From Takakia lepidozioides (lineage: Eukaryota > Plantae > Bryophyta), in contig CM060732.1 of NCBI GenBank assembly GCA_030704615.1, forward strand, positions 30,814,001-30,878,000: a stretch of 64,000 bases of DNA. The letters are read 5' to 3'. Made by a program: the position numbers and the translations under genes. Positions 21,915-57,290 of this stretch are shown here, in pieces (position 1 is the stretch's first letter; each line of letters opens with the position of its first letter). Below the pieces are notes generated by a model. The model was not told the DNA's origin, ran no database searches, and saw only the letters and a list, made by a program, of their open reading frames with translations.

Positions 21915-24870
21915 TCATGAGACTTTGGACACAAGCTCACGATGGAGGTCCTGTGGATTGAGTTGGTCAACTCCTCCTTGGGTGAAAGCAGAGCTAGCTG
22001 CCATAATACAAGGTGCGGGACAATCTGTGATGCTACAGACTATGGTCACAGGACAAACACCTGTGAAACACGGGCTGTGGCAGAATGTGAGTATCATTCA
22101 CAATCAGCCTGCCTTGAACGGTGGACATAGCAATTACGAGTTCCTTCAGCAGGTTCCCACATCTGTAGTTTTATTATTTTTGTTTGTTTTTGTGTGGGGG
22201 ACGCTGGGAATGAGCTCTGGCATAACAACTTGCAACAGTATTATCCAAAACTACACTTTTGGAAACTGGCGAAGTTATCACGTGCCTGTAGTTTTTGCGC
22301 CCAGGTGGGGGCAATGGTTTTTCTCAGATCCTTCACGGTGGTGGGACAAGACGATCTGATAGAGTAGGCCATCTTCATTTATGACAGGAAAGAGTCGGAG
22401 GGCTTCATGTCAATTAGACGGATCCAGTGGTCTTAGGTTCAAAGTTACACCTGGTTATTGGATGCAACACATTGTAGCTGACCCAGCCCTGGAAAGGGAG
22501 CCACTCTCACCTAGCAGCTTTAAGCCCTTGGGGAAGGATTGGGCAGTCGTGGCACATTGCCCAGGTTACAGCCGGCAGAAGTCTTCACCTTCCATTGGAA
22601 GATGACAGCCCTAGGGGGTGAACAGACATGCAAAATTACACTGGTTTTGGCATGGGCCCACCCTTTTTTCTTTGAATGCGATTGTGTCTCCGTCCAAGTA
22701 AGCTTTGCTTTGTCTCAAAAACCAGCAATTCTTGCTATGAATAGGTTGCGCTTTTCATGTCAGCAAGGCATGAAGGTAGGTTGCTCAAGGTTGTTCCCTG
22801 CTATTCAAGAGATGGAGCTTCTTTGGTTGTAGCCTGGTGTATGCAATGTGGGGATTGAAGGTATGACTGCTCCTATGGGGTGGTTACACAGAAAAGTCCG
22901 AGATCGCCACATGTCAGACATGAGTGGACAAGGGAGGCCCCGTGGATTAAGGGTTTGTTGAACCCTCCTTCAGTAAAAGCAGAGCTTATTGCAATCAGAC
23001 AAGGTCAAGCACAGTCTGGTGATAATCCAGAATATTGTCAAAGGATAGAATCTGGGCAAGCACAGGCTGTGGACAAACTTGAGTATCACCCAAAATCGGC
23101 ATGGCTTGAAGGACCGACAGTGGGAGTCAACAGTACCTCTTCTCACCCTTGCGGGGATGTGAGGATACTATGCAAGGAAGGACGTTTGAAAGAGGCACTG
23201 CACATTTTGAACAAACGAGGCATTCGTGCAGATACGAATACTTATGTTTGTGTCTTGCAGGCTTGCATCAAGATGAAAGGCCTATTAGAGGGAAAACAGG
23301 TGCATGCGCACATTATCCAAAGTGGATACATACCGAACACCTTTCTTCTGAACACCCTCATCAACATGTATGCCAAGTGTGGGAGCATGGTTGAGGCACA
23401 TAAAGTGTTTGACAAGATTCCTGAGCGAGATGTGTTTACGTGGAATGTAATGATAGGAGGATATGCCAAGCATGGGTGTGATAGGGAGGCGTTCCAGATG
23501 TATGATCTAATGCAACGGCAAGTGGTGATGCCCAACATGGTTACATTCACTTGTGTTCTCAATGCATGTGCCAGCCTGGGAATCCTGGAAAAGGGCAAAG
23601 AGGTCCACGCTGACATCATTAGAAGTACAATTGTGCAAGATGTTATTCTGCAGAATGCTCTTGTCAACATGTATGCGAAATGTGGGAGTATGAAGGATGC
23701 TTGCCAAGTGTTCAACAAGATGGCCCAACGAGATGTGGTCTCTTGGAACGCCATGACCACTGGATATACTCAGCATGGTTGTGGTAGGGAGGCTTTTGAG
23801 ATCTATGAGCACATGCAACAGGAAGGGGTGATGCCTAACAGGGTCACATTCACTTGTGTTCTCAAAGCATGTGCCAGCCTAGGTGCACTGGAAAGTGGCA
23901 GAAAGGTGCATAGGGACATAATCAAAGCTGGGATTTCACTAGATATTATTCTTGAGAATGCCCTCATCAACATGTATGCCGATTGCGGGAGTGTGAAGGA
24001 AGCGCAACAAGTGTTCAGCAGTATGGCTCAACACGATGTTGTTTCATGGAGTGCGATGATAGCAGGATATGCTGAGCACGAATGTGGTAGGGAGGCTTTC
24101 GAGACCTATGAGCAAATGATAGTGGAAGGGGTGACTCCCAATGAGGTCACGTTCATTTCCTTACTCAATGTGTGTTCCAGCCTGGCATCCCTGGAAAAGG
24201 GCATAGAGGTCCATGCTGCCATTATCAAGGCTGGGATTGTGCCAAATGCCATACTGGAGACTGCCCTGGTGGACATGTACTGCAAAGGTGGGAGCATGAA
24301 GAATGCCCGGGGAGTATTCAACGGTATGGCTAAACGTGATCTAGTGTCATGGAATGCGATGATTCGTGGATATGCTCAACATGGATGTGGTAGGGAGGTT
24401 CTCCAACTATTCGAAAAAATGCAATGGGAAGGTTTGAAGCCAAACAATGCAACTTTTTTATGTCTTCTTTCTGCATGCAGCCATGTAGGCCTAGTGGATG
24501 AAGGCCAGCACTACTTCAAAGCCATGAGGCATCATCATGGCCTCACTCCTACACTGGAACATTTTGGCTGCATGGTGGACCTTCTTGGCCGTGCTGGGCA
24601 CTTGGATGAGGCAGAGGACTTCATTAACAGAATGTCAATTGAACCAGGTGCTTATGTGTGGGGGGCCTTGCTTGGTGCCTGCAGAATTCATGGCAATGTG
24701 GAGATCGCAGAGCATGCGGCAAAATGCCTTCTCAACTGTGATCCAGAGCATGCTTCCACTTATTTGCTGATCTAAAACTTGTTTTGTGGTAGCTGGTAGG
24801 TAAGATGATAAGGCAAAGGTAAAAAAATGGAGGGCAGCTATGTCAAAAAGGAGCAGGGCACAACTGCATT
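21915..24870 (+). pseudogene. PLS-class PPR gene (ORF 22880-24775) truncated in E2, with no DYW domain; degenerate PDF-motif exons upstream
   Basis: P-L-S triplets, then L2-S2-E1; premature TAA at TYLLI*, followed by a frameshifted remnant (AGR*DDKAKV..KKEQG); upstream DFGHKLTMEVLWIE/PPWVKAEL (21921-21995), FFSDPSRWWDK (22318-22350), KSPRSPHVRHEWTREAPWI (22892-). Confidence 0.85.
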
Positions 24871-42269: not shown

Positions 42270-42619
42270 CGTATTCACTTCCATCTTCAAGCTCGGGAGA
42301 AGCACCACCACCCAAACCCAGAATTAGGACAGCACTCTGATCTCCACCCACTGTCACCAGAATCCGTCAAATATGACCCCTTCAGTCACGTGCAATTATG
42401 GGCTGACTTCCCACCCATGCCGGGTAGACCCCACTATCATTTTCCGTATTCACTTCCATCTTCAAGCTTGGGAGAAGCACCACCACCCAAACCCAGAATT
42501 AGGACAGCACTCTGATTTCCACCCACTGTCACCAGAATCCGTCAAATATGACCCCTTCAGTCACGTGCAATTATGGGCTGACTTCCCACCCATGCCGGGT
42601 AGACCCCACTATCATTTTC
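42270..42619. repeat. Tandem duplication, 2 x 175 bp, near identical
   Basis: cgtattcacttccatcttcaagct...ccactatcattttc at 42270 and again at 42445. Confidence 0.95.
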
Positions 42620-42651
42620 CATGGATATGCCACAGGAATGCACTCAGCAGT

Positions 42652-45600
42652 ACATCATGGTCAATACTCTCAGGAAATGGTGGATGATCTGAGTAGCTAC
42701 ACAGATCAATGAATGAAGCAAGAAACTCGCATCTTTCCAAAAAAAAAAATCCTTTCACCAGTAATCCCCACAAGAACAAATCCCATCTTCAAAGTGGTGA
42801 AAGCGGTTAGCGTCCCGTACAACAATTGCTCGGCCAACAATCTTTGAGATGAATTTGGTGGAGGTGTGGCAGTCACCACACACTCGAAGATTCTTAATGA
42901 GACGGAGAGGCGTCCTAGGGGTCGTGCTGATCAGCCCAAAACCAATGGCCAGCTTCTCACTGTGGTGGCAAAGAGAACATTCCTTTTCCTCCTCCCCCAC
43001 ATCATGCAATACAAAGCGCGTGTCAGGCACATACCCCGCCTCCTTCATCTGCCCAGACAATCTTCTCAGCTCAGCATGGATTTCCTTCATTCTGGGATGC
43101 AACTTGTCATCTACAACAAAGGTGTGCACCCTGTTGCCAACCTCAATGCAGCAGCGACCTGGCTCCTTTCTAACCCCTCTGACCTTCATCATTCTTCTCA
43201 CCTTTGCAGTATCATCCCACCTGCCAGCTGCGGCATAGATGTTTGAAAGCAACACATAAGTCGCGGCATCCTGTTCATCCCACTTGAGGATAGATGTTGC
43301 TGCACGTTCAGCCATCTCCACATTGCCATGGATTCTGCAGGCACCAAGCAAGGCCTTCCACACCACAACATCTGGATTGATTGGCATCTTATTAATCAGA
43401 TCCACTGCCTCATCCAGTTGTCCCGCACGTCCAAGAAGGTCCACCATACAGCCAAAGTGCTTTACTGTCGGAGTGACACCATGATCTTGACTCAGGGAAT
43501 CAAAGTAGCGTCTTCCTTCATTCAGTAGGCCAGTGTGGCTGCATGCAGAGAGAACACATATAAAGGTGACACTGTCCGGCTTCAAGCCGTTCTTTTGCAT
43601 TCCTTCAAATAGTTGCAGGACCTCCCTATGACAACCATGCTGGGCATATCCTGCCATCATTGCACTCCATGACACCAAATCTCGTTCAGCCATACTGTCG
43701 AACACTCCCTTCGCAGCCTCCATGCACCCACATTTGGCATACATGTCCACCAGGGCAGTGTTCAGAATGACATCGGGTACAATTCCAGCTTTGACGATGT
43801 CACCATGGACCTCTTTGCCCTTTTCCAGGGCTGCCAGGCTTGCACACGCATTGCAAACGCACACAAACGTGATGTGGTTGGGCTTCACCCCTTCCCCCAT
43901 CATTTCCTCATAGGTTTCCAAAGCCTCCATCCCGCGACCATGCTGGGCATATCCTGCGATCATTGCGTTCCACGACACCACATTTCGTTCAGCCATATTG
44001 TCGAACACTGCCTTCGCATCCTCCATGCACCCACATTTGGCATACATGTCCACCAGGGCAGTGTTCAGAATGACATCGGGTACAATTCTAGCTTTGATGA
44101 TGTCACCATGGACCTCTTTGCCCTTTTCCAGGGCTGCCAGGCTTGCACACGCATTGCAAACAGAAACAAACGTGATGTGGTCGGGCTTCACCCCTTCCAC
44201 CATCATTTGCTCATAGGTCTCCAAAGCCTCCATCCCGCGCCCTTGCTGTGCATATCCTGCAATCATCGCACTCCACGACACCAAATCTCGTTCAGCCATA
44301 CTGTCGAACACTGCCTTCGCATCCTGGATGCACCCACATTTTGCATACATGTCCACGAGGGTATTGTTCAGAATCACATCTGGTAAAATTCCAGCTTTAG
44401 CGATGCAACCATGCACCTCTTTGCCCTTTTCCAGGGCTGCCAGGCTTGCACACGCACTGCAAACAGACACAAACGTGATGTGGTCGGGCTTCACCCCTTC
44501 CCCCATCATTTCCTCATAGGTCTCCAAAGCCTCAATCCCACGCCCCTGCTGTGCATACCCTGCAAGCATCGCGTTCCACGACACCACATTTCGGTCAGCC
44601 ATATTGGTGAACACTGCCTTCGCATCCTCAATGCTCCCACATTTGGCATACATGTCCACCAGGGCATTGTTCAGAATGACATGGGGTACAATTCCAGCTC
44701 TGACAATGTCACCATGGACCTCTTTGCCCTTTTCCAGAGCTGCCAGGCTTGCACACGCATTGCAAACGCACACAAACGTGATGTGGTTGGGCTTCACCCC
44801 TTCCCCCATCATTTGCTCATAGGTCTCCAAAGCCTCCACCCCATGTCCCTGCTGTGCATACCCTGCAATCATCGCGCTCCACGACACCACATCTCGTTCA
44901 GCCATATTGTTGAAAACTGCCTTCGCATCCTTAATGCACCCACATTTGGCATACATGTCCACCAGGGCAGTGTTCAGAATGACATCTGGTACAATTCCAG
45001 CTTTGATGATGTCACCATGGACCTCTTTCCCCTTTTCCAGGTCTCCCAGACTTGCACACGCATTGCAGACACAAACAAACGTGATGCGGTTGGGCTTCAC
45101 CCCTTCGCGCATCATTTGCTCATAGGTCTCCAAAGCATTCATACCACACCCATGCTTGGTAAATCCTGCCAACATTATATTCCACGTGATCAAAGATCGT
45201 TGAGGCATTCTGTTGAACACTTGGTGAGCATCCATGATGCTCCCACACTTAACATACATGTTGACAAGGGTGTTGAGTAGAAAAACATTTGGCGTGAATC
45301 CACTTTGGATAATGTGAGTGTGCACCTGCTTTCCAGCTTCCAGGCCTTTCATCTTGATGCACTTATGCAAGAGACAGACATACGTATCTGAATCTGCTGA
45401 AATGCCCCCTTGGTTTAAAGTCTGTAGAGCCTCTTTCAGTCTGCCTGCCTCACAAAGCATCTTCACATGTCCAGAAGTGCCAGAAGAGGCATCGTGGACT
45501 CCCTCTCTTGATTCTCTTCCAGAAGCTGTGGTCATGGTTGAGGTGCCTGATTTTATCAACTGTGCCACTGCAGCTGCTGCCTTTAGTTGACCATCTACCC

Positions 45601-47311
45601 ATGCAGGTTTCTTGTAGCTATTGATCCACAGGGAATCATAGGTAATCTTGTGCTTGAAATCTGGCCCTCTTGGATGAATCTGGACCCACAATCTATCCCT
45701 GCTCCTTCAGCTATCCATGCCTCTGCACAAATCATGCATACATCCTTGCCTTGCTGCTAGCAGCTGACAATGACAGCCTAGAATTGTTCCAGAAAACACC
45801 CCAACCCTACTTATCACACTAGTACCTATGCTGACTTGCGTCTGCTTCCAACAGGCATTCACCTTTTTGCCTCGATTGTTCCACCATTGACTGGGATCGG
45901 AAACGTATTCATTCCAGAGCTTCTCCTCGTCTCTGTTATCTGTTTTTCGACTTTCCTGTTGCCACATTGGCAGTAACATGTCAAAATCACTCCAAAACCA
46001 CCATAGATCCACGAACGAGCTAACTTGCAAAATTCAACATGAACATTTAGGGACGACTCTGATAACGGGAAAAACAGGCTGTGTTGAAGAAGGTGCTTTC
46101 ATTAGCAGTGCCTGTGCCGCAGCCGCTGCTGTTTCCAGTTAACCATCTACCCACACAGATTTCTGGTAGCTATTGATCCACAGGGAATCAGAAGTAATCT
46201 TGTCTTTGAAATCCGGCCCTCTATCCCTGGTCCTTCAGCTATCCCTGCCTGTGTACAGATCATGAATACATCCTCAGCCTTGCTGCTAGCAGCTGACACT
46301 GACGCCGTGAAGTTCTTCCAGCAAACACCCAACCCTACTTATTACAGTAGTTCCAATTCTGAATTGCATCTGCTTCTCGCTGTAGTCCAACAGGCATTCA
46401 CCTTTTTGTCTCCATTGTCCCACCATTGACTGGGGTCGGAAAAGTGTTCATTCCAAAGCTTCCCCTCATTTCTGTTATCTGTTTTTGGATACTTTCCTGC
46501 TACCACATCGGCAGTAACTTGTGAAATTCACTCCAAACCACCACAGATCCACCCAACGAACTAACTTACACAATTCAATATGCATCTCAGGGGTCTGGTG
46601 AGAGGGCAAAACAGGCTGAAATAGGTCGAAGAAGAAGGTGCCCTCACCACATTGTCCTTGACCTTGTGTCATGACCCATGGAGGATTTGACCGACCATCA
46701 ACCCAAAAGGACCTCTTGTGTGTGCTGCTTGTGCCTGTAGTCAGGTAATGTCGAATTGGTCTGTGAGAACCACCACGGTGCAGCTGAGCAGGCAGAGGTT
46801 GAAACACGGCCTGCTAAGACCAAGCTGACTCTCCCAAGAACCTTGTAAACATCAGGAAGAATACCAAATCATGGTACTAACAGGAGCCAAGAGCCCACAT
46901 TTGCAGGATGGACAAACTTCTTCACATCGTACATTAAGAAAAAGCCACACCTTGCGATTGCGGTTGTCCCACCATCGTGAAGGATCTTTAAAAAAGTCAT
47001 GCCGGCTCTGCTCCGTGCTCCAAGGTAGTGGTTTGTGCTCGAAAATCCGACAGCATCAACATTCTGACAAGGTCCTTTACTGAGGGGTGCTAGTGAGCTT
47101 TCAACAACATTCATGCAAGTTGTTTTGGGCTCCATTGGGCTCTACACGACGAGGAACAACGAGCATGTCCAGACGTACACAGATGCTAACCCAGCTTATG
47201 CTTGCAGTCTGGAGATTGTAGAGTGGTCTCTGAAAACGACCATAGAGGGAGGAAGGCGCTGAGCAGCCAGAGTGTTTTACCCTGGGTCTCGGCATTTAAG
47301 TTTTTCTCACG
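42652..47311. repeat. Left arm of a ~4.65-kb inverted segmental duplication
   Basis: Reverse complement of 52411-57059; boundaries acatcatggtcaatactctc... and ...ggcatttaagtttttctcacg. Confidence 0.95.
42755..45955 (-). CDS. PDF-motif + PLS-PPR-E1-E2-DYW C-to-U editing factor, copy L (large exon 42755-45679; PDF exon 45863-45955; further PDF exons up to ~47230)
   Basis: 978-aa ORF with six L-S-P triplets at a 303-bp period, PG box KEPGRCCIEV, HSEKLA, NLRVCGDCH, ending HHFEDGICSCGDYW; N-terminal HPRGPDFKHKITYDSLWIN. Confidence 0.93.
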
Positions 47312-50300
47312 GTCTATTGTTTTAACTTGGTAATTCGTCGAGTAGGTAGGGTGTTGATAGTTGGTGAGCGGGTGAGCAGTATTTTTTCCACTGATGTGAC
47401 ATTTGTTTTATTAAGTTAATTTGATTAAAAGGGCCCTGGGTGGTGTCCCATTTCTCAGCCTTCATGGCGCTGTTATTGTGAAAGAGGTTATTTTCTCCTC
47501 TCACTATCAAGGGGCCTGATTTGTGAGCTGTCGCTCCGAGATGTTTAGAAAATAAAATAAAAATAAAAGGCCTTTGTCCCCTTTCCATGAAAAAAAACTT
47601 AAGAAAATTAAAAAATTAAGGAGGCAGGAATAAGCTTCCATCCCCAGCTAAACCCACTCTCCTCTCTGGAGATAAGACTCCTCCTGCGAGGCCAGTCCCA
47701 GAAGCCGCCACAAGCTCCCCCAACCCTTCAAACGACCCAGCAGATCTGTTACAAATCAAAAGTCCCATGGATGTTGTGGGTTCGGAGCCACAATTCATCA
47801 GCCCCTCTCGTCCAGTTCCAAAAAAGCACAGGGAGTCCACGGACCCAATGAGGTTGGAATCTGCACATGTCAAGGCTTCATGGAGCAGCAAGGGCAAATG
47901 GATCCCAGTGGGAGGTGTTGCATACACCTACCCCACCGTCGGCTGATTCAGCCATTCTGCCAAACAGGCCCACGTAGCAATCTATATCTACAATGCTTAC
48001 TGGCATAGCAAACCACTCAGCCATAGCCACGGCACTTGAAAGTATCAGATCGTTCCTCACTTGACTCTCCGCAGCTCCACGGAGGTTAATTCTGAAGAAA
48101 GTCCGAAAGCCTCATGCATCACCCCTCTAATCTTTAGGAAAGGACCACCACAGTCTAATTTCCTCGTTACAGAGGCTGCATGGGATGATTTTGCATCACT
48201 TTGGGTCACTGCTCATGATGTGGCCACTTCTTGCAAATTGCTCACCTAACAAGACATGCTCAAGAAAAAAATTCAAGATTTCCCGCTGTCTAAATTGCCC
48301 GACTATCACCTGGCTGGTACCCAAGGTCTCCTGGGGATCCTTCCTGGTCAAATTCCCGGGACTTAGCTGCAACCCGGTGGCTCATATTCTAGCACTAATG
48401 GAAGAGGTTGACATCTATGGGTCTCAGCCCCCGCAGGGATCATCGTGGGTGAAGAAAAGCATCCTTTCAGAGCCATGGGGTACTGCCAAGCTGAACCCAT
48501 GCTACAAGGAAACACTCATCAATGCCTTTGACATTCTCGAGGCAATTCTGGAAGCAGAGGTGGACGAAGACAATCACAGGGGGGATCTTCCTGGAGGACT
48601 CGGGATCACCTTTACGGAGCCAGGCCAGCACCCTCTCCATCCTCCTCCTCCAGTGTCTCGGGTCGCTCCGTGGCGCTCGCACCTTCAATGCCCAGTCCTG
48701 AAGCCTACACCTAGTGACCCATCTCAGCATGGCGTTATTCTGTCTCCAAGCACTTCCGCCCTGGTTCCTTCACCGCGCGCCCCCCCACCTCCTGCTCCTC
48801 GGTCCAACGTGGAAGAAGATTTTATCAACACTGACCAGGTTCCCTCCTCCTTCTACCCTTGCTTTATTTTCTATGCTGATAAAATCGACTCTAAACTGTT
48901 GGCTTCTTTGTCGAAAAAACTCTCTCAAAAGGTCAGTTCGTAGAAGGCTACCATCTCTCTCTCTTCCTTCTACCTTTCCCCTGCCCTATTGCCATGGCTC
49001 TCACCAGCACCCTCCCCTCTCTCTTCAACTCCCTCTTCCAGAAATTTTTTTCCTTTGTTCTACCCAATTGCTATCTATCTCCCTTTTCCATCCTCCCCCC
49101 AGTCAATTTCTCTTCCCCCCAACCCATCCTGCAACATCCCCCCAGCCACAGTAACTATGATCTAGGTCAAGAAGCTTTTACCTAGGCCCCCTCTGGGTTT
49201 CCACTGGGTCAACTCCCTCCTCCCAACAGATCGTAGGGTTTGTTTTTTCCTCGATCCCCCTAGGCCATCAAATGAGGTTAACACCCTTCGCCTCTCCCTC
49301 AACCCAAATGTTGATTAACCTTTCCTCCTGGAACAGTAGAGGGCTAGGCCAGGGCCTTGACTCGCTTAAAAAAATCCGCTTCAAAACCTGGCTCCAGCCA
49401 TTTCTTTGTCAAGACGCCATCATATCCTTCCAAGAACACAAGTTAGACATTTTCAAAATATCCGAGCTCAAAGATCATCTCTGGCCTCTCAATCTCTCTC
49501 CATGGAAACCGACTTCCGCTAGCTCCAAAGGAGGAACTGCTATCCTCCTCTCACCCTCTCTCCACTTTCTCCTCCGCTGTGAGGCCTCCTGGATTCCTGG
49601 GAGGGCTCATGAATTTTGTGCCCTTGACCTCCCAACAACACGGGTTCTCATCAATATTTATGCGCCAAATTCTACCTCGGAAAGAGCAGACTTCTGGCTA
49701 GCACTAAGAAATATTAAAATGAAAGAAATTGACTTTCTTGATAGCTGGGTCATTATGGGGGACTTCAATATGGTGGAAGCCCCAGAGGACCGTAGATGCC
49801 CCTCTGCCTTAACCCAACCTCGGTAGAAATGGACAATTGGAACAACTTATCCCACTTTCATAATCTTGTAGAAGCAGTCTCTCCCTCCCTAGCGGCGCCC
49901 CCTTCCTCACAGCTCCCTACCTTTACCTTGTCAAACAATAGAACTCTTCCTGACCTCCAATTGGCCAGACTTGATAGATTTTATTCTTCTCTAAATCTCG
50001 TCCAATGGATCACCAGAAACCCCCAATCCCGGACGTTACAAGGTTTTGACCATGCTTTCATCTCAGCCTCTATCTCCATCCCGAACTCCCAAACTAGGGG
50101 CAAAGGGATATACAAGCTTAATACTTCTCTGCTCAAGATTCCTTCTTTTAAGCAGGGGCTCCTCACTGCCGTCCCAAGCGGGCTCCCCTGATCAGGACCC
50201 CATCACTAAGTTCCAAGCAAAGCTTAAAGCTGTAGGCACTGCTGCTCAAGTCATGAGCAAGGATTCTCTTAGGCCCAGCTTTGTAGACCGCATAAGGAAG

Positions 50301-52410
50301 GAGATCTGGGACTAATTGACCCGGTCATGCAGATCTCCGCCTTGCTCTCTAAGTGGATACCAAGGTCGTTTTGTAATGGATCTAGCCCCTGGTGTACGCT
50401 ATTCAGAGCGCACATGGTGCACTCCCAACTCCCCATCCTGGGCACCATCCCTTAAATGGCTGTTTCATGGTGCTGGAAAGTCACGAACAGCTGGATCTGC
50501 TGCCTGGAACTCTACATAGGAGGCATGGAAGTCCATTCGTCCCCATTTGTCTCAAAGAAGAGCTGCCTGCTTTGAAGAGGCCATTCGCCAACCCTTATTT
50601 GGCAATCCCAACTTGGGTTGTGAACATTTGGCTGCTCTCAATAAGAAGTGGGCCACTTGGGAGGCAAGAGGTCTTTCGCACATTGCCAATATCTGAGAAA
50701 ATGGTCAGTTTCTGGACCCTTCCCTCTTGTCCTCCATGCTTTCTGCTAATTCCATTAGGACCGGCTGGGAACAGATTAAATCAGGTGTTTCATTCGTACA
50801 ACCCTTGTTACTTGGGGGCCCCTGTACTATCAATGATCTGCCTGTTTGGTTCGGATGCTCAGAGGGCAACAGACTCGTGGCCCTCCTGGCGGTCTTGTCC
50901 TCACAGACGCACTGGGAAGGTCTCCTTTTCAGGCCTTCCTCTAATATTGGGAGACTCTCCTTCATTGGAAATGGGGAATTGCTTCATGACCTAGTGGCCT
51001 CCTGGTGGCTTACAGAATTAGAGTCTTCGACACTCTAACAGGATCGACAGAACCCAGGCCTCCGCAGGGAGGAGAATAGTGTTGGGCTCAGAAATTTCAT
51101 ATGGTTCTTGAACCCGCTCAACAGATTCGACCCGGGCGAATGGTCATGGAAAGATGATAAAAAGACACCTCTGTTGGGTTACACTGTGAAACTGGTTACA
51201 TGATGCTTCTCGGTAAGGCAGACTTTGTAGAGAAGTGGAATCGCAAATGGAACTTCAATCTACAGTCACCTACTTGGAACTCGGTCTGGAAGGACATTTG
51301 GGCCAAGCGCCGCTCGGCAAAAACTAGTGCCTTTCTTTGGAAGCTGACGAATAGGATTCTGCCCATGGCCGTTTGTTTCCCTGATCGTGACCCTTCTTGC
51401 TTGGTTTGCAATTGCAATCTAAATGAGACTATTGAGCATGCCGTCACTGAATATTACCTGTCTGTAAGGATCTGGCAGCTTGTCACAGCCTTCCATGCGT
51501 GCTGGAAATCTGTGCCCCGTACAGCTGCACCCCTGCTGCTTCTAAACATGCACAATGGGTCTATTTTGGAGTAATTGTCCAATTTGCGCATGCCTCAGGG
51601 CACACACCCTTGGTCGATTTGGAAGGCTAGATGTAGTTTGTTATTTGAAGGGAGGTGCCCCAACATCAGATTAGTGCTTTATAAATTATTTGCTGATCTG
51701 ATGACTGAGAGGCGTAAGGCATGTGTGTCTTTGGAAACAGCTTCAACCAGGTGTAGCGACAGGAGGAGTCGTCAACTCTTCACGGACTTCGACCTCACCT
51801 GGGCCACGATCTCTCCTCGCGAATCACTTGGCATGATGCCATCCCCGGGGGAATGGCAAATCCCTTGCTGAGTCAGATGGACTCGACGTCAACTGGAAGC
51901 ATCTCAGTCTGCATGCTGCGAAATCTAAAGTCCACCTGAACTTCGGGCTCTAATCTATTTCTCTGATTTGAGGCACTTTGCTACTTAGTGCCCGTTTATC
52001 TGCTATGCAGCCATATAGTTAGGCTGTCAATATTGCTACTGCCTGGCTAGATTTGGTCCTATGGCGATCCCCCTCCCCGCCTTCTCTCGAACTTATTCTT
52101 AGATACTCCCGCTTCCCCCCCCCTTCCCTCTTAGTGCTGGGTGTTCCCATTCATCCAAAGGGGCCGGATTTCCAACACAAGATTACTTCTGATTCCATGT
52201 GGTTCTTTATAATAATTCCAGCACATTTGGTTCCATATGTGATCATGTGATACACTTTTACATCTCCTTGGAGGTTATTTTCCCTGCTCTATGTTCTGCT
52301 TTTTTGCCCCTTCGATAAAGTTCCGATGAGGGCCTCAGACCCCTGTTGCCCCAAAAAAAAAGAAAAAAGAAAAAGAACTTCATTCCCTTTATTTAAAAAA
52401 AAGAAAAGAA
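47312..52410 (+). mobile_element. LINE-derived spacer: a short LINE 3' end (47312-~47585) and an internally deleted L1-like LINE (~47603-52410; ORF1-like region, endonuclease, no RT core, zf-RVT, A-rich tail)
   Basis: SWNSRGLG, FQEHKL, INIYAPN, MGDFN, RLDRFY (49272-50191); WKDIWAKRRSAKTSAFLWKL..CLVC..ETIEH (51200-51574); A-rich tail 52353-52410; no DFEKAFD or YADD seen. Confidence 0.9.
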
Positions 52411-55400
52411 CGTGAGAAAAACTTAAATGCCACTCTGGCTGCTCAGCGCCTTCCTCCCTCTATGGTCGTTTCGAGAGAACACTCTACAATCGCCAGACTG
52501 CAAACATAAGCTGGGTTAGCATCTGTGTACGTCTGGACATGCTCGTTGTTCCTCGTCGTGTAGAGCCCAATGGAGCCCAAAACAACTTGCATGAATGTTG
52601 TCGAAAGCTCCCTAGCACCCCTCAGTAAAGGACCATGTCAACATGTTGATGCTGTCGGATTTTCGATCACAAACCTCTACCTTGGAGCACGGAGCAGAGC
52701 TGGCTTGAGTTTTTAAAAGATCCTTCACGATGGTGGGACAACCGCAATCGCAAGGTGTGGCTTTTTCTTAATGTACGATGTGAAGAAGTTTGTCCATCCT
52801 GCAAATGGCTCCTGTTAGTACCATGATTTGGTATTCTTCCTGATGTTTACAAGGTTCTTGGGAGAGTTAGCTTGGTCTTAGCAGGCCGTGTTTCAACCTC
52901 TGCCTGCTCAGCTGCACCGTGGTGGTTCTCACAGACCAATTCGACATTACCTGACTACAGGCACAAGCAGCACACACAAGAGGTCCTTTTGGGTTGATGG
53001 TCGGTCAAATCCTCCATGGGTCATGACACAAGGTCAAGGACAATGTGGTGAGGGCACCTTCTTCTTCGACCTATTTCAGCCTGTTTTGCCCTCTCACCAG
53101 ACCCCTGAGATGCATATTGAATTGTGTAAGTTAGTTCGTTGGGTGGATCTGTGGTGGTTTGGAGTGACTTTGACCAGTTACTGCCGATGTGGCAGCAGGG
53201 AAGTATCCACAAACAGATAACAGAGATGAGGAGAAGCTTTGGAATGAACACTTTTCCGACCCCAGTCAATGGTGGGACAATGGAGACAAAAAGGTGAATG
53301 CCTGTTGGACTACAGAGAGAAGCAGATGCAATTCAGAATTGGAACCACTGTAATAAGTAGGGTTCGGGTGTTTGCTGGAAGAACTTCACGCCGTGTCAGC
53401 TGCTAGCAGCAAGGCTGAGGATGTATTCATGATTTGTACTCAGGCAGGGATAGCTGAAGGACCAGGGATAGAGGTCCAGAAACATCCAAGAGGGCCGGAT
53501 TTCAAACACAAGATTACTTCTGATTCCCTATGGATCAATAGCTACAAGAAATCTGTGTGGGTAGATGGTCAACTGGAAACAACAGCGGCAGCAGCACAAC
53601 TGATAGAACAAGGCACTGCTAATGAAGGCACCTTCAACACATTTCAGCCTGTTTTTACCTGTTATCAGAGTCGTCCCTTTTCATGTTGAATTCTGCAAGT
53701 TAGCTCGTTCGTGGATCTATGGTGGTTTTGGAGTGATTTTGACATGTTACTGCCAATGTGGCAACAGGAAAGTGTCGGAAAACAGATAACAGAGACGAGG
53801 AGAAGCTCTGGAATGAATTCGTTTCCAATCCCAGTCAATGGTGGAACAATCGAGGCAAAAAGGTGAATGCCTGTTGGAAGCAGACGCAAGTCAGCACAGG
53901 AACTAGTGTGATAAGTAGGGTTGGGTGTTTGCTGGAACAATTCTAGGCTGTCATTGTCAGCTGCTAAGGATGTATGCATGATTTGTGCAGAGGCATGGAT
54001 AGCTGAAGGAGCAGGGATAGAGTGTGGGTCCAGGTACATCCAAGAGGGCCAGATTTCAAGCACAAGATTACCTATGATTCCCTGTGGATCAATAGCTACA
54101 AGAAACCTGCATGGGTAGATGGTCAACTACAGGCAGCAGCTGCAGCGGCACAGTTGATAAAATTAGGCACTTCAACCATAACCACAGCTTCTGGAAGAGG
54201 ATCAAGAGAGGGAGTCCACGATGCCTCTTCTGGCACTTCTGGGCATGTGAAGATGCTTTGTGAGGCAGGCAGACTGAAAGAGGCTCTACAGACTTTAAAC
54301 CAAGGGGGCATTTCAGCAGATTCAGATACGTATGTCTGTCTCTTGCATAAGTGCATCAAGATGAAAGGCCTGGAAGCTGGAAAGCAGGTGCACACTCACA
54401 TTATCCAAAGTGGATTCACGCCAAATGTTTTTCTACTCAACACCCTTGTCAACATGTACGTGAAGTGCGGGAGCATCATAGATGCTCACCAAGCGTTCAA
54501 CAGAATGCCTCAACGATCTTTGATCACGTGGAATATAATGTTGGCAGGATTTACCAAGCATGGGTGTGGTATGAATGCTTTGGAGACCTATGAGCAAATG
54601 ATGCGCGAAGGGGTGAAGCCCAACCGCATCACGTTTGTTTGTGTTTGCAATGCGTGTGCAAGCCTGGGAGCCCTGGAAAAGGGGAAAGAGGTCCATGGTG
54701 ACATCGTCAAAGCTGGAATTGTACCAGATGTCATTCTGAACACTGCCCTGGTGGACATGTATGCCAAATGTGGGTGCATTAAGGATGCAAAGGCAGTTTT
54801 GAACCATATGGCTGAACGAAATGTGGTGTCGTGGAGCGCGATGATTGCAGGGTATGCGCAGCAGGGACGTGGGGTAGAGGCTTTGGAGACCTATGAGCAA
54901 ATGATGGGGGAAGGGGTGAAGCCCAACCACATCACGTTTGTGTCCGTTTGCAATGCGTGTGCAAGCCTGGCAGCCCTGGAAAAGGGCAAAGAGGTCCATG
55001 GCAACATTGTCAGAGCTGGAATTGTACCCGATGTAATTCTGAACAATGCCCTCGTAGACATGTATGCCAAATGTGGGAGCATCGAGGATGCGAAGGCAGT
55101 GTTCACCAATATGGCTGACCGAAATGTGGTGTCGTGGAACGCGATGCTTGCAGGGTATGCACAGCAGGGGCGTGGGATGGAGGCTTTGGAGACCTATGAG
55201 CAAATGATGGTGGAAGGGGTGAAGCCCGACCACGTCACGTTTGTGTGTGTTTGCAGTGCGTGTGCAAGCCTGGCAGCCCTGGAAAAGGGCATAGAGGTGC
55301 ATGGTGGTATCACCAAAGCTGGAATTGTGCCAGATGTGATTCTGAACAATACCCTCGTGGACATGTATGCAAAATGTGGGAGCATCCAGGATGCGAAGGC

Positions 55401-57059
55401 AGTGTTCGACAGTATGGCTGAACGAGATTTGGTGTCGTGGAGTGCGATGATTGCAGGATATGCACAGCAAGGGCGCGGGATGGAGGCTTTGGAGACCTAT
55501 GAGCAAATGATGGGGGAAGGGGTGAAGCCCAACCACATCACGTTTGTTTCCGTTTGCAATGCGTGTGCAAGCCTGGCAGCCCTGGAAAAGGGCAAAGAGG
55601 TCAATTGTGACATCGTCAAAGCTGGAATTGTACCCGATGTCATTCTGAACACTGCCCTGGTGGACATGTATGCCAAATGTGGGTGCATGGAGGATGCGAA
55701 GGGAGTGTTCGACAGTATGGCTGAACGAGATTTGGTGTCGTGGAGTGTGATGATTGCAGGATATGCACAGCAAGGGCGCGGGATGAAGGCTTTGGAGACC
55801 TATGAGCAAATGATGGGGGAAGGGGTGAAGCCCAACCACATCACATTTGTTTGCGTTTGCAATGCGTGTGCAAGCCTGGCAGCCCTTGAAAAGGGCAAGG
55901 AGGTCCATGGTGACATCGTCAAAGCTGGAATTGTACCCGATGTCATTCTGAACACTGCCCTGGTGGACATGTATGCCAAATGTGGGTGCATTGAGGATGC
56001 GAAGGGAGTGTTCGACAATATGACTGAACGAAATGTGGTGTCGTGGAACTCAATGATCGCAGGATATGCCCAGCATGGTTGTCATAGGGATGTCCTGCAA
56101 CTATTTGAAGGAATGCAAAAGAACGGCTTGAAGCCGGACAGTGTCACCTTTATATGTGTTCTCTCTGCATGCAGCCACACTGGCCTACTGAATGAAGGAA
56201 GACGCTACTTTGATTCCCTGAGTCAAGATCATGGTGTCACTCCGACAGTAAAGCACTTTGGCTGTATGGTGGACCTTCTTGGACGTGCGGGACAACTGGA
56301 TGAGGCAGTGGATCTGATTAATAAGATGCCAATTAATCCAGATGTTGTGGTGTGGAAGGCCTTGCTTGGTGCCTGCAGAATCCATGGCAATGTGGAGATG
56401 GCTGAACGTGCAGCAACATCTATCCTCAAGTGGGATGAACAGGATGCCGCGACTTATGTGTTGCTTTCAAACATCTATGCTGCAGCTGGCAGGTGGGATG
56501 ATACTGCAAAGGTGAGAAGAATGATGAAGGTCAGAGGGGTTAGAAAGGAGCCAGGTCGCTGCTGCATTGAGGTTGGCAACAGGGTGCACACCTTTGTTGT
56601 AGATGACAAGTTGCATCCCAGAATGAAGGAAATCCATGCTGAGCTGAGAAGATTGTCTGGGCAGATGAAGGAGGCGGGGTATGTGCCTGACACGCGCTTT
56701 GTATTGCATGATGTGGGGGAGGAGGAAAAGGAATTTTCTCTTTGCCACCACAGTGAGAAGCTGGCCATTGGTTTTGGGCTGATCAGCACGCCCCCTAGGA
56801 CGCCTCTCCGTCTCATTAAGAATCTTCGAGTGTGTGGTGACTGCCACACCTCCACCAAATTCATCTCAAAGATTGTTGGCCGAGCAATTGTTGTACGGGA
56901 CGCTAACCGCTTTCACCACTTTGAAGATGGGATTTGTTCTTGTGGGGATTACTGGTGAAAGGATGTGTTTTTGGAAAGATGCGAGTTTCTTGCTTCATTC
57001 ATTGATCTGTGTAGCTATTCAGATCATCCACCATTTCCTGAGAGTATTGACCATGATGT
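52411..57059. repeat. Right arm of the inverted segmental duplication
   Basis: cgtgagaaaaacttaaatgcc... to ...gagagtattgaccatgatgt is the reverse complement of 42652-47311. Confidence 0.95.
52688..56958 (+). CDS. PDF-motif array + PLS-PPR-E1-E2-DYW C-to-U editing factor, copy R. Predicted exons ~52688-52754, ~52885-53032/53053, 53199-53293, 53480-~53627, 53768-53862, 54034-56958; start codon unresolved
   Basis: 978-aa ORF with intact HSEK..CGDCH..DYW; upstream exons bounded by AG and GT encode WLEFLKDPSRWWDNRNRK, EEKLWNEHFSDPSQWWDNGDKK|KHPRGPDFKHKITSDSLWINSYKKSVWV and EEKLWNEFVSNPSQWWNNRGKK|VHPRGPDFKHKITYDSLWINSYKKPAWV. Confidence 0.9.
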
Positions 57060-57061
57060 CG

Positions 57062-57290
57062 GTCAGCAAGGTGTGGGTGAAGAGGCGTTTACTGTATATC
57101 AGGAATGCAACGAGATGGTATGAAGCCAAATGATGTCACCTTCATGAGTGTCCTCAATTCATGTGCCAACCCATCAGCCCTGGAACAAGGGAAGCACTGA
57201 TATCATCAAAGCTGGAAGGGAGCTCGATGTCCGGGTAGGGACTGCCCTTGTCAGCATGTATTCCAGATGCGGGAGCGTGGAGGATGCGTG
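57062..57290 (+). pseudogene. Frameshifted PLS-PPR fragment
   Basis: QGVGEEAFTVYQ / MQRDGMKPNDVTFMSVLNSCA..LEQGK / DVRVGTALVSMYSRCGSVEDA. Confidence 0.8.

Follow-up and report, generated by a model that had tools for sequence, protein, structure and literature searches.

It is an open question how a plant whose organelle editing sites number in the hundreds or thousands gains PPR-DYW factors to match. A locus in the moss Takakia lepidozioides, a species for which 750 DYW genes have been reported (PMC13386178), bears directly on it. The window analyzed was a 64,000-nt stretch of this genome (GenBank assembly GCA_030704615.1, contig CM060732.1, forward-strand positions 30,814,001 to 30,878,000), and all positions below are counted from its first nucleotide. 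We observed two intact 978-codon open frames without a stop, copy L (42755-45691, minus strand) and copy R (54022-56958, plus strand), lying in opposite orientation and head to head. Both encode an array of alternating P, L and S motifs (PLS array) of the PPR family, followed by E1, E2 and DYW domains. Our preferred explanation, to which we give a probability of roughly two in three, is that these are sister PPR-DYW copies whose arrays have become mosaic by non-reciprocal exchange, and that the accompanying change in recognition code gives them different predicted RNA preferences.

Two PPR-DYW frames and their recognition code

A blastn self-comparison placed the frames in an inverted duplication of 4.6 kb, with 42652-47274 matching 57059-52431 at 95.45% identity over 4662 columns, and sliding identity was also used to define its arms. 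The left arm (42652-47274, minus strand) carries copy L with its upstream exons and introns, the main frame and ~100 nt of 3' flank; the right arm (52431-57059, plus strand) carries copy R. Each frame begins with a putative PDF half-module and continues through the PLS array and E1-E2 to DYW. In copy L, 45679 is the likely start of the last exon. Copy R has no ATG before codon 78, so its start must lie in upstream exons.

The array covers residues 136-706 in both copies (43574-45286, minus strand, in copy L; 54427-56139, plus strand, in copy R). It is built in tandem from P (35 residues), L (35) and S (31) motifs, with a leading S, five P-L-S units of 101 residues and P2, giving a period of 303 nt; a degenerate P-L pair is present as well. 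The last triplet, P2-L2-S2, deviates from the preceding units and is followed by the E1/E2 extension. The remaining L2-S2-E1-E2-DYW tail (42758-43573, minus strand, and 56140-56955, plus strand) differs between the copies at 4 of 816 nt.

Both copies were matched by the Pfam families PPR, PPR_1, PPR_2 and PPR_3, and by E_motif at residues 788-850 (E=4e-20). The Eplus_motif match was weaker in both (21 bits, below the Pfam cut-off of 24 bits). DYW_deaminase (PF14432) matched full length at residues 886-978 (E=2e-43 and 7e-44 in the two copies). The catalytic and zinc signatures HxE (HSE) and CxxCH (CGDCH) were intact in both copies, as was the C-terminal DYW. By every sequence criterion tested, copies L and R are ordinary members of the PPR-DYW editing-factor family, PLS-class genes of the type that specifies plant organelle C-to-U editing sites.

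We cut the proteins as S(31), five P(35)-L(35)-S(31) units and P2, and took the 5th and last residues of the S and P motifs. The pairs were NS, NN, TD, SN, NN, ND, ND, SD, TN, NN, TD, SD in copy L and NS, NN, TN, SN, NN, ND, ND, SN, TD, SN, TN, ND in copy R. Six of the twelve differ (L/R): S1 TD/TN, P4 SD/SN, S4 TN/TD, P5 NN/SN, S5 TD/TN and P2 SD/ND. The initial annotation had given the same lists and the same count. It had also reported two residue changes in the tail (residues 707-978), KECSL/KEFSL and STTP/STPP, and these are what we found, together with 2 synonymous changes.

All 24 pairs fall among NS, NN, ND, TD, TN, SD and SN, every one of which is in the published code. In that code T or S with N reads A, T or S with D reads G, ND reads U, NS reads C and NN reads a pyrimidine, with S2 facing position -4 (PMC10482289). 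From this code and register the annotation had derived the targets CYnGAnYUnUGnAYnGGnnnnnC for copy L and CYnAAnYUnUAnGAnAUnnnnnC for copy R, and the derivation is correct. The predicted bases at -19, -12, -10, -9, -7 and -6 are G, G, A, Y, G and G for copy L, and A, A, G, A, A and U for copy R. Five of the six code differences face -12 to -6; in the editing factor PPR56, mutants and the off-target profile identified -13 to -6 as the most discriminating positions (PMC10482289). By the published code, copies L and R should prefer different RNA, and retargeting is a reasonable prediction from it.

Code residues differed at 6 of 24 positions, compared to 40 of 547 other array residues (P = 0.009, Fisher test), in line with the excess of change at code positions that the annotation had anticipated. 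Four of the six code differences sit in two tracts and are not independent events, which leaves about four events behind the excess. The same enrichment would arise without selection if conversion took place among units already different at these positions.

Probable exchange tracts at the S/P junctions

We aligned the 303-bp units of both copies, the comparison that the annotation had proposed for finding conversion tracts, and obtained two junction tracts and trees that break positional pairing at junction 4/5. Whole-unit identity kept positional partners together for units 1-4 (96-97%). Unit 5 broke the pairing: the two fifth units were 93.1% identical, compared to 95.4% between unit 5 of copy R and unit 4 of copy L. 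Junction 3/4 was identical in the two copies. Junction 4/5 of copy R was 5 nt from this junction and 15 nt from junction 4/5 of copy L. In copy L, P5 opens with 45 nt of P2 type, as at junction 5/6 of copy R, and junction 5/6 holds a short insert of junction-3/4 type. The blocks DSMAERD-LVSWS and DNM(A/T)ERN-VVSWN (the hyphen marks the S/P boundary), described as swapped in the annotation, are real and occupy junctions S4/P5 and S5/P6 (S5/P2) in opposite order in copies L and R.

Tract A extends in copy L from residue 22 of S4 to residue 26 of P5 (43904-44011, minus strand) and reads DNMAERN-VVSWN there. It holds 15 differences from copy R in 126 nt, with a synonymous divergence (dS) of 0.34. 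In copy R (55702-55809, plus strand) the tract reads DSMAERD-LVSWS and is a near copy of junction S3/P4. Tract B runs in copy L from residue 17 of S5 to residue 19 of P2 (43622-43723, minus strand), where a short DSMAERD-LVSWS cassette lies in a P2-type motif. In copy R (55990-56091, plus strand) it holds a DNMTERN-VVSWN cassette that junction distances, a donor walk, the tree and partition distances all place close to junction 4/5 of copy L.

A Sawyer-type permutation on units re-phased as L-S-P was dropped, because the diverged P2 makes a column block variable for every pair and confounds the test. We used a walk between the parent and a shifted donor instead. The walk found two uninterrupted runs of donor-type sites, one of 12 and one of 7 (permutation P = 0.0002). 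The run of 12 lies in tract A of copy R (P = 0.0002), and the run of 7 in tract B of copy L, where the sites match copy R shifted by 606 nt (P = 0.0008).

Partitioned trees agreed with the walk. The cores of units 1 and 3 kept their L-R partners (support 100/99). In the junction tree, junction 4/5 of copy R grouped with junctions 3/4 (89/92) and that of copy L with junctions 5/6. By partition distance, the start of P5 in copy R differed by 2 nt from the start of P4 and by 12 nt from the P5 start of copy L, and the end of S4 in copy R was 1 nt from the end of S5 in copy L.

Across units 1-5, both states were found at the same site of other units for 30 of the 64 differences between the copies. 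A point-mutation simulation predicted 7.2 +/- 2.5 such shared-state differences, and the highest value among its 5000 runs was 19. With the two tracts set aside, the count was still 15 of 44. These data suggest gene-conversion-like exchange at the S/P junctions, and the statistical support for it is good. At least two exchanges are needed under any polarity. Units 4 and 5 resemble each other in their cores as closely as L-R partners do (4-9 nt in 180), so the net effect looks like a swap. Two code differences lie apart from tracts A and B. For P4-last there is a weak tract of three sites (unit 4, nt 86-123) where copy L carries the states of unit 3 of copy R. The S1-last difference has private changes around it and resembles a point change.

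On our preferred explanation, copies L and R are sister nuclear PLS-class PPR-DYW genes that belong to a very large young family and sit in an inverted duplication of 4.6 kb. After duplication, both frames stayed open, while the array would have acquired sequence from other 303-bp units or from family members; the exchange would have been homologous but non-reciprocal, through gene conversion or template switching. Only five residues separate the last residue of S from the 5th of the next P, and a single tract of 40-100 bp spanning such a junction therefore carries two recognition residues together. Two or more such exchanges would explain why the order of the cassettes D+S and N+N at S4/P5 and S5/P2 is reversed between the copies. 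Four of the six code differences trace to these cassettes, in tracts of about 100 bp. A weaker short tract would have brought the P4-last difference, and S1-last would have arisen by point change.

A bolder extension is that the S/P junction is a portable two-residue specificity cassette, and that ongoing triplet homogenization plus cassette exchange, inside single copies as well as among hundreds of them, generate editing specificities combinatorially. We regard this extension as doubtful. If it is true, cassette exchange could explain how this moss lineage built and maintains an exceptionally large set of DYW editors and edited sites.

The exchanges may also be real with donors among other family members elsewhere in the genome, that is, ectopic conversion between loci. 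The family appears very large, and the end of S1 in copy R carries four changes in 32 nt, three of them absent from every unit of either copy. Tract A differs at 5 sites from its best donor within the array. Set against this, good donors exist within the arrays (the P4 start and the S5 end of copy L, at the 2 nt and 1 nt given above). We consider ectopic donors possible, with the odds against them.

Divergence, constraint and the surrounding family

The non-coding DNA upstream of the frames had 3.3% mismatches and 11 indels in 1621 columns. At this rate about 20 indels would be expected in the 2937-nt frame, and we found none (P = 2e-9). The lack of indels indicates that both frames have been kept open under constraint. 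dS was 0.033 in both the flanks and the N-terminal part, rose to 0.086 in the PLS array (0.070 with the tracts left out) and fell to 0.011 in the tail. The ratio of non-synonymous to synonymous divergence (dN/dS) ranged from 0.29 to 0.41 over the frame and was 0.41 in the array; in tract B it was 1.23, from 12 changes. Silent-site divergence in the array was thus more than twice that of the neutral flank. Selection on the protein cannot explain faster silent change, and import of paralogous sequence can. Synonymous and non-synonymous changes moved together within the tracts. In the tail, where silent divergence is a third of that in the flank, we counted 2 silent changes, compared to about 6 expected from the flank (P about 0.06). 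This low divergence could reflect homogenization of the tail from arm to arm, or chance.

The code differences might be functionally neutral, one or both copies being redundant or unused in an over-amplified family. RNA-like unitigs of public sequencing runs could not be assigned to either copy, dN/dS gave no sign of adaptive change, and an older paralogue 20 kb away is truncated. Against neutrality, 2 x 2.9 kb of frame contained no indel and no stop next to DNA with 11 indels and 3.3% mismatches, dN/dS was well below 1, and the catalytic HxE and CxxCH motifs were intact. We consider neutrality unlikely.

The size of the family bears on the assembly. In DNA run X1, 80,055 unitigs were at least 94% alike on a 4.8-kb stretch at copy L, and the summed unitig depth dropped by two to three orders of magnitude just past 47270. 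Summed unitig depth does not equal copy number, and we read it only as pointing to a young family with very many copies. In each of four runs drawn from separate studies, the whole of 42600-47270, introns and upstream DNA included, was covered by tens of thousands of unitigs at least 94% alike. The coverage of introns and upstream DNA, together with the fixed upstream boundary, points to amplification of the 4.6-kb unit at the DNA level, not to retroposition of a spliced mRNA. We saw no terminal inverted repeats, long terminal repeats or poly(A) tail at the arm ends.

Within this family, copies L and R agreed at 11 of 17 listed in-frame places that vary among members, and at 8 of these 11 they carried the minority letter. 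At 5 of the other 6 places, in the N-terminal part and the array, copy R has the alternative letter of the unitigs. By the shared minority letters and 95.5% identity over 4.6 kb including introns, copies L and R are sisters within the family. A protein word search of public proteins found no relative above 60% identity; the best were 55-60% identical.

Such a family, with hundreds of near-identical members that each contain 303-bp repeats, could also mislead an assembler. Under this alternative, the mosaic tracts are artefacts of assembly or polishing, in which mis-assigned reads overwrite stretches of ~100 bp and mimic gene conversion. The number of near-identical unitigs and their depth relative to the adjacent flank favor it, and the tracts are about as long as a short read. 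Four observations argue against it, none of them decisive. Both frames are perfectly open. Copy L retains private minority letters that polishing toward the consensus would have erased. Tract A of copy R has two private changes relative to its donor. Signs of exchange extend beyond the tracts, to the 15 of 44 differences with both states in other units. An artefact of this kind seems improbable to us.

Independent point mutations under selection at code positions, with no exchange between units, are strongly disfavored: every code toggle is a single-nucleotide step (GAT/AAT, AGY/AAC, ACN/AAC) and the S1-last change lies among private substitutions, but in the tracts 12-15 neighboring sites switch together to the state of another unit, many of them synonymous, and the shared-state excess is significant (P < 0.0002).

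Several points weigh against mosaic exchange with altered RNA preference. We observed no sign of positive selection in the array, as its dN/dS indicates, and about four events underlie the enrichment at code residues. Trees resolve the cores of units 1 and 3; those of units 2, 4 and 5 resemble each other too closely. With 74% identity and junctions of a different kind, the older paralogue cannot serve as an outgroup to polarize the changes, and the direction of exchange and the identity of the donors are what we infer. Public unitigs are only ~100 nt long, so that tract phase and copy-specific expression cannot be assigned from them. The targets of copies L and R are predictions from the code. 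In the PPR56 work the code alone predicted targets imperfectly, and code-based retargeting often fails experimentally (PMC10482289).

The pair is of interest as a dated one, in which 3.3% neutral divergence stands alongside change in six of twelve reading motifs, mostly as short copied blocks. Block copying between internal repeats would be one concrete, testable route to new targets, as far as these can be predicted. Near-identical natural scaffolds with different codes would also be useful for editing assays and for the design of programmable C-to-U editors. The weight of the case is limited by the predicted nature of the targets, by the provisional state of the repeat assembly, and by an array build that is common in moss and clubmoss proteomes.

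Related systems and neighboring sequence

Moss DYW editors such as PPR56 of Physcomitrium patens have the same order of PLS, P2-L2-S2, E1, E2 and DYW with HxE and CxxCH, use the same 5th/last code and share the register with S2 opposite -4 (PMC10482289). Unlike them, copies L and R belong to a very high-copy young family, show 83-93% identity among their triplets and appear to have an OSB-like PDF module; their best public relatives are 55-60% identical. For the restorer-of-fertility-like (RFL) clusters of flowering plants, unequal crossing-over is reported, with change concentrated at residues 5 and 35 (PMC7380019). They resemble the present pair as clustered, fast-evolving PPR paralogues. 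RFL genes are P-class without a deaminase, block transcripts of cytoplasmic male sterility and show demonstrated diversifying selection, whereas copies L and R are PLS-class with DYW, have an array dN/dS of 0.41, and carry their changes in imported tracts, synonymous sites included.

TALE arrays and the PRDM9 zinc-finger minisatellite are modular readers in which one repeat reads one base or one triplet, and recombination among similar repeats reorders the specificity residues. The initial annotation had proposed gene conversion among the triplets in a TALE- or PRDM9-like way. Exchange among the 303-bp units stands, on the junction tracts, the shared states and the array dS; the likeness was overstated. 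The units are 83-93% identical at the DNA level, and 44 of 101 residue columns vary, not confined to the code. The four code columns are two-state toggles, yet they are not the most variable columns. In copies L and R the unit is a block of three motifs, and a two-residue junction cassette moves, not whole repeats. There is also no gain or loss of units between the copies, unlike in TALE and PRDM9 arrays. We therefore limit the analogy to mechanism, recombination among repeats, where it would hold subject to the assembly caveat; the arrays are only loosely TALE-like.

Uniform PLS arrays were also seen in public proteins. Of the 120 best public hits, 59 had at least 70% identity at an offset of 101 residues. 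KC19_1G285400 of Ceratodon purpureus (P0077) is built of 101-residue units with identities of up to 99%, nearly all of their differences being at the 5th residue of P and the last of S, and several proteins of Diphasiastrum complanatum also have homogenized PLS arrays. These are single proteins without a sister copy, so they show code toggles on a uniform scaffold, not exchange events. Synthetic consensus PLS-DYW editing factors reportedly consist of identical triplets, with the target chosen through residues 5 and last alone. They are designed, whereas the scaffold of copies L and R is natural and only partly uniform. With an array build shared by public moss and clubmoss proteins, copies L and R are a clear example and not a unique one, and they are a datable example of a process that is probably widespread in seed-free plants. 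In the searchable literature (open papers) we found no description of conversion among PLS triplets of editing factors, and none of a PDF-PPR fusion.

Upstream of each PPR frame (45680-47274, minus strand, and 52431-54033, plus strand) lie tandem modules of ~550 bp that encode halves of an OSB-like PDF motif. A candidate phase-0 intron of copy L (45680-46401, minus strand) has GT..AG ends. Its removal would join an upstream exon ending ...SDPSQWWDNGDKK to IHPRGPDFKHK...LWI...PAWV, into one OSB-like PDF module. The splice joint 45679/46402 was present in unitigs of runs X5 and X6, which were guessed to be RNA, and absent from the DNA runs X1 and X7; the unitigs that bear it may derive from other family copies. 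The joint leaves out an intervening copy of the module, in which a stop ends the B half. The two halves of the pattern W..DNR..K ... PDFKHK ... LW ... P.WV were read by eye, one in an upstream exon and the other where the frame starts. On this reading, copies L and R appear to carry an OSB-like PDF module from their upstream exons. An extra B-type fragment lies outside the duplicated arm at 52143-52205 (plus strand).

The spacer between the arms (48185-51600, plus strand) contains decayed frames of a non-LTR retrotransposon (LTR, long terminal repeat), including an Exo_endo_phos endonuclease (49272-49826) and zf-RVT (51200-51574). An A-rich run is found at ~52350-52430, just ahead of the right arm. 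Directly downstream of the arm of copy L, at 42270-42620, is a 175-nt tandem duplication that is 99% identical.

Two further PPR sequences lie in the window. A PPR-like fragment directly past the end of the right arm (57072-57288, plus strand) is 44-60% identical to residues 182-256 of copy L, which suggests that copy R inserted into, or adjoins, a remnant of another PPR gene. The older paralogue (22880-24775, plus strand; ~74% DNA identity) begins in a PDF-like way and contains four PLS units that have diverged further. Its frame stops inside E2 (...ASTYLLI) without a DYW domain, and it is probably a truncated or decaying copy.

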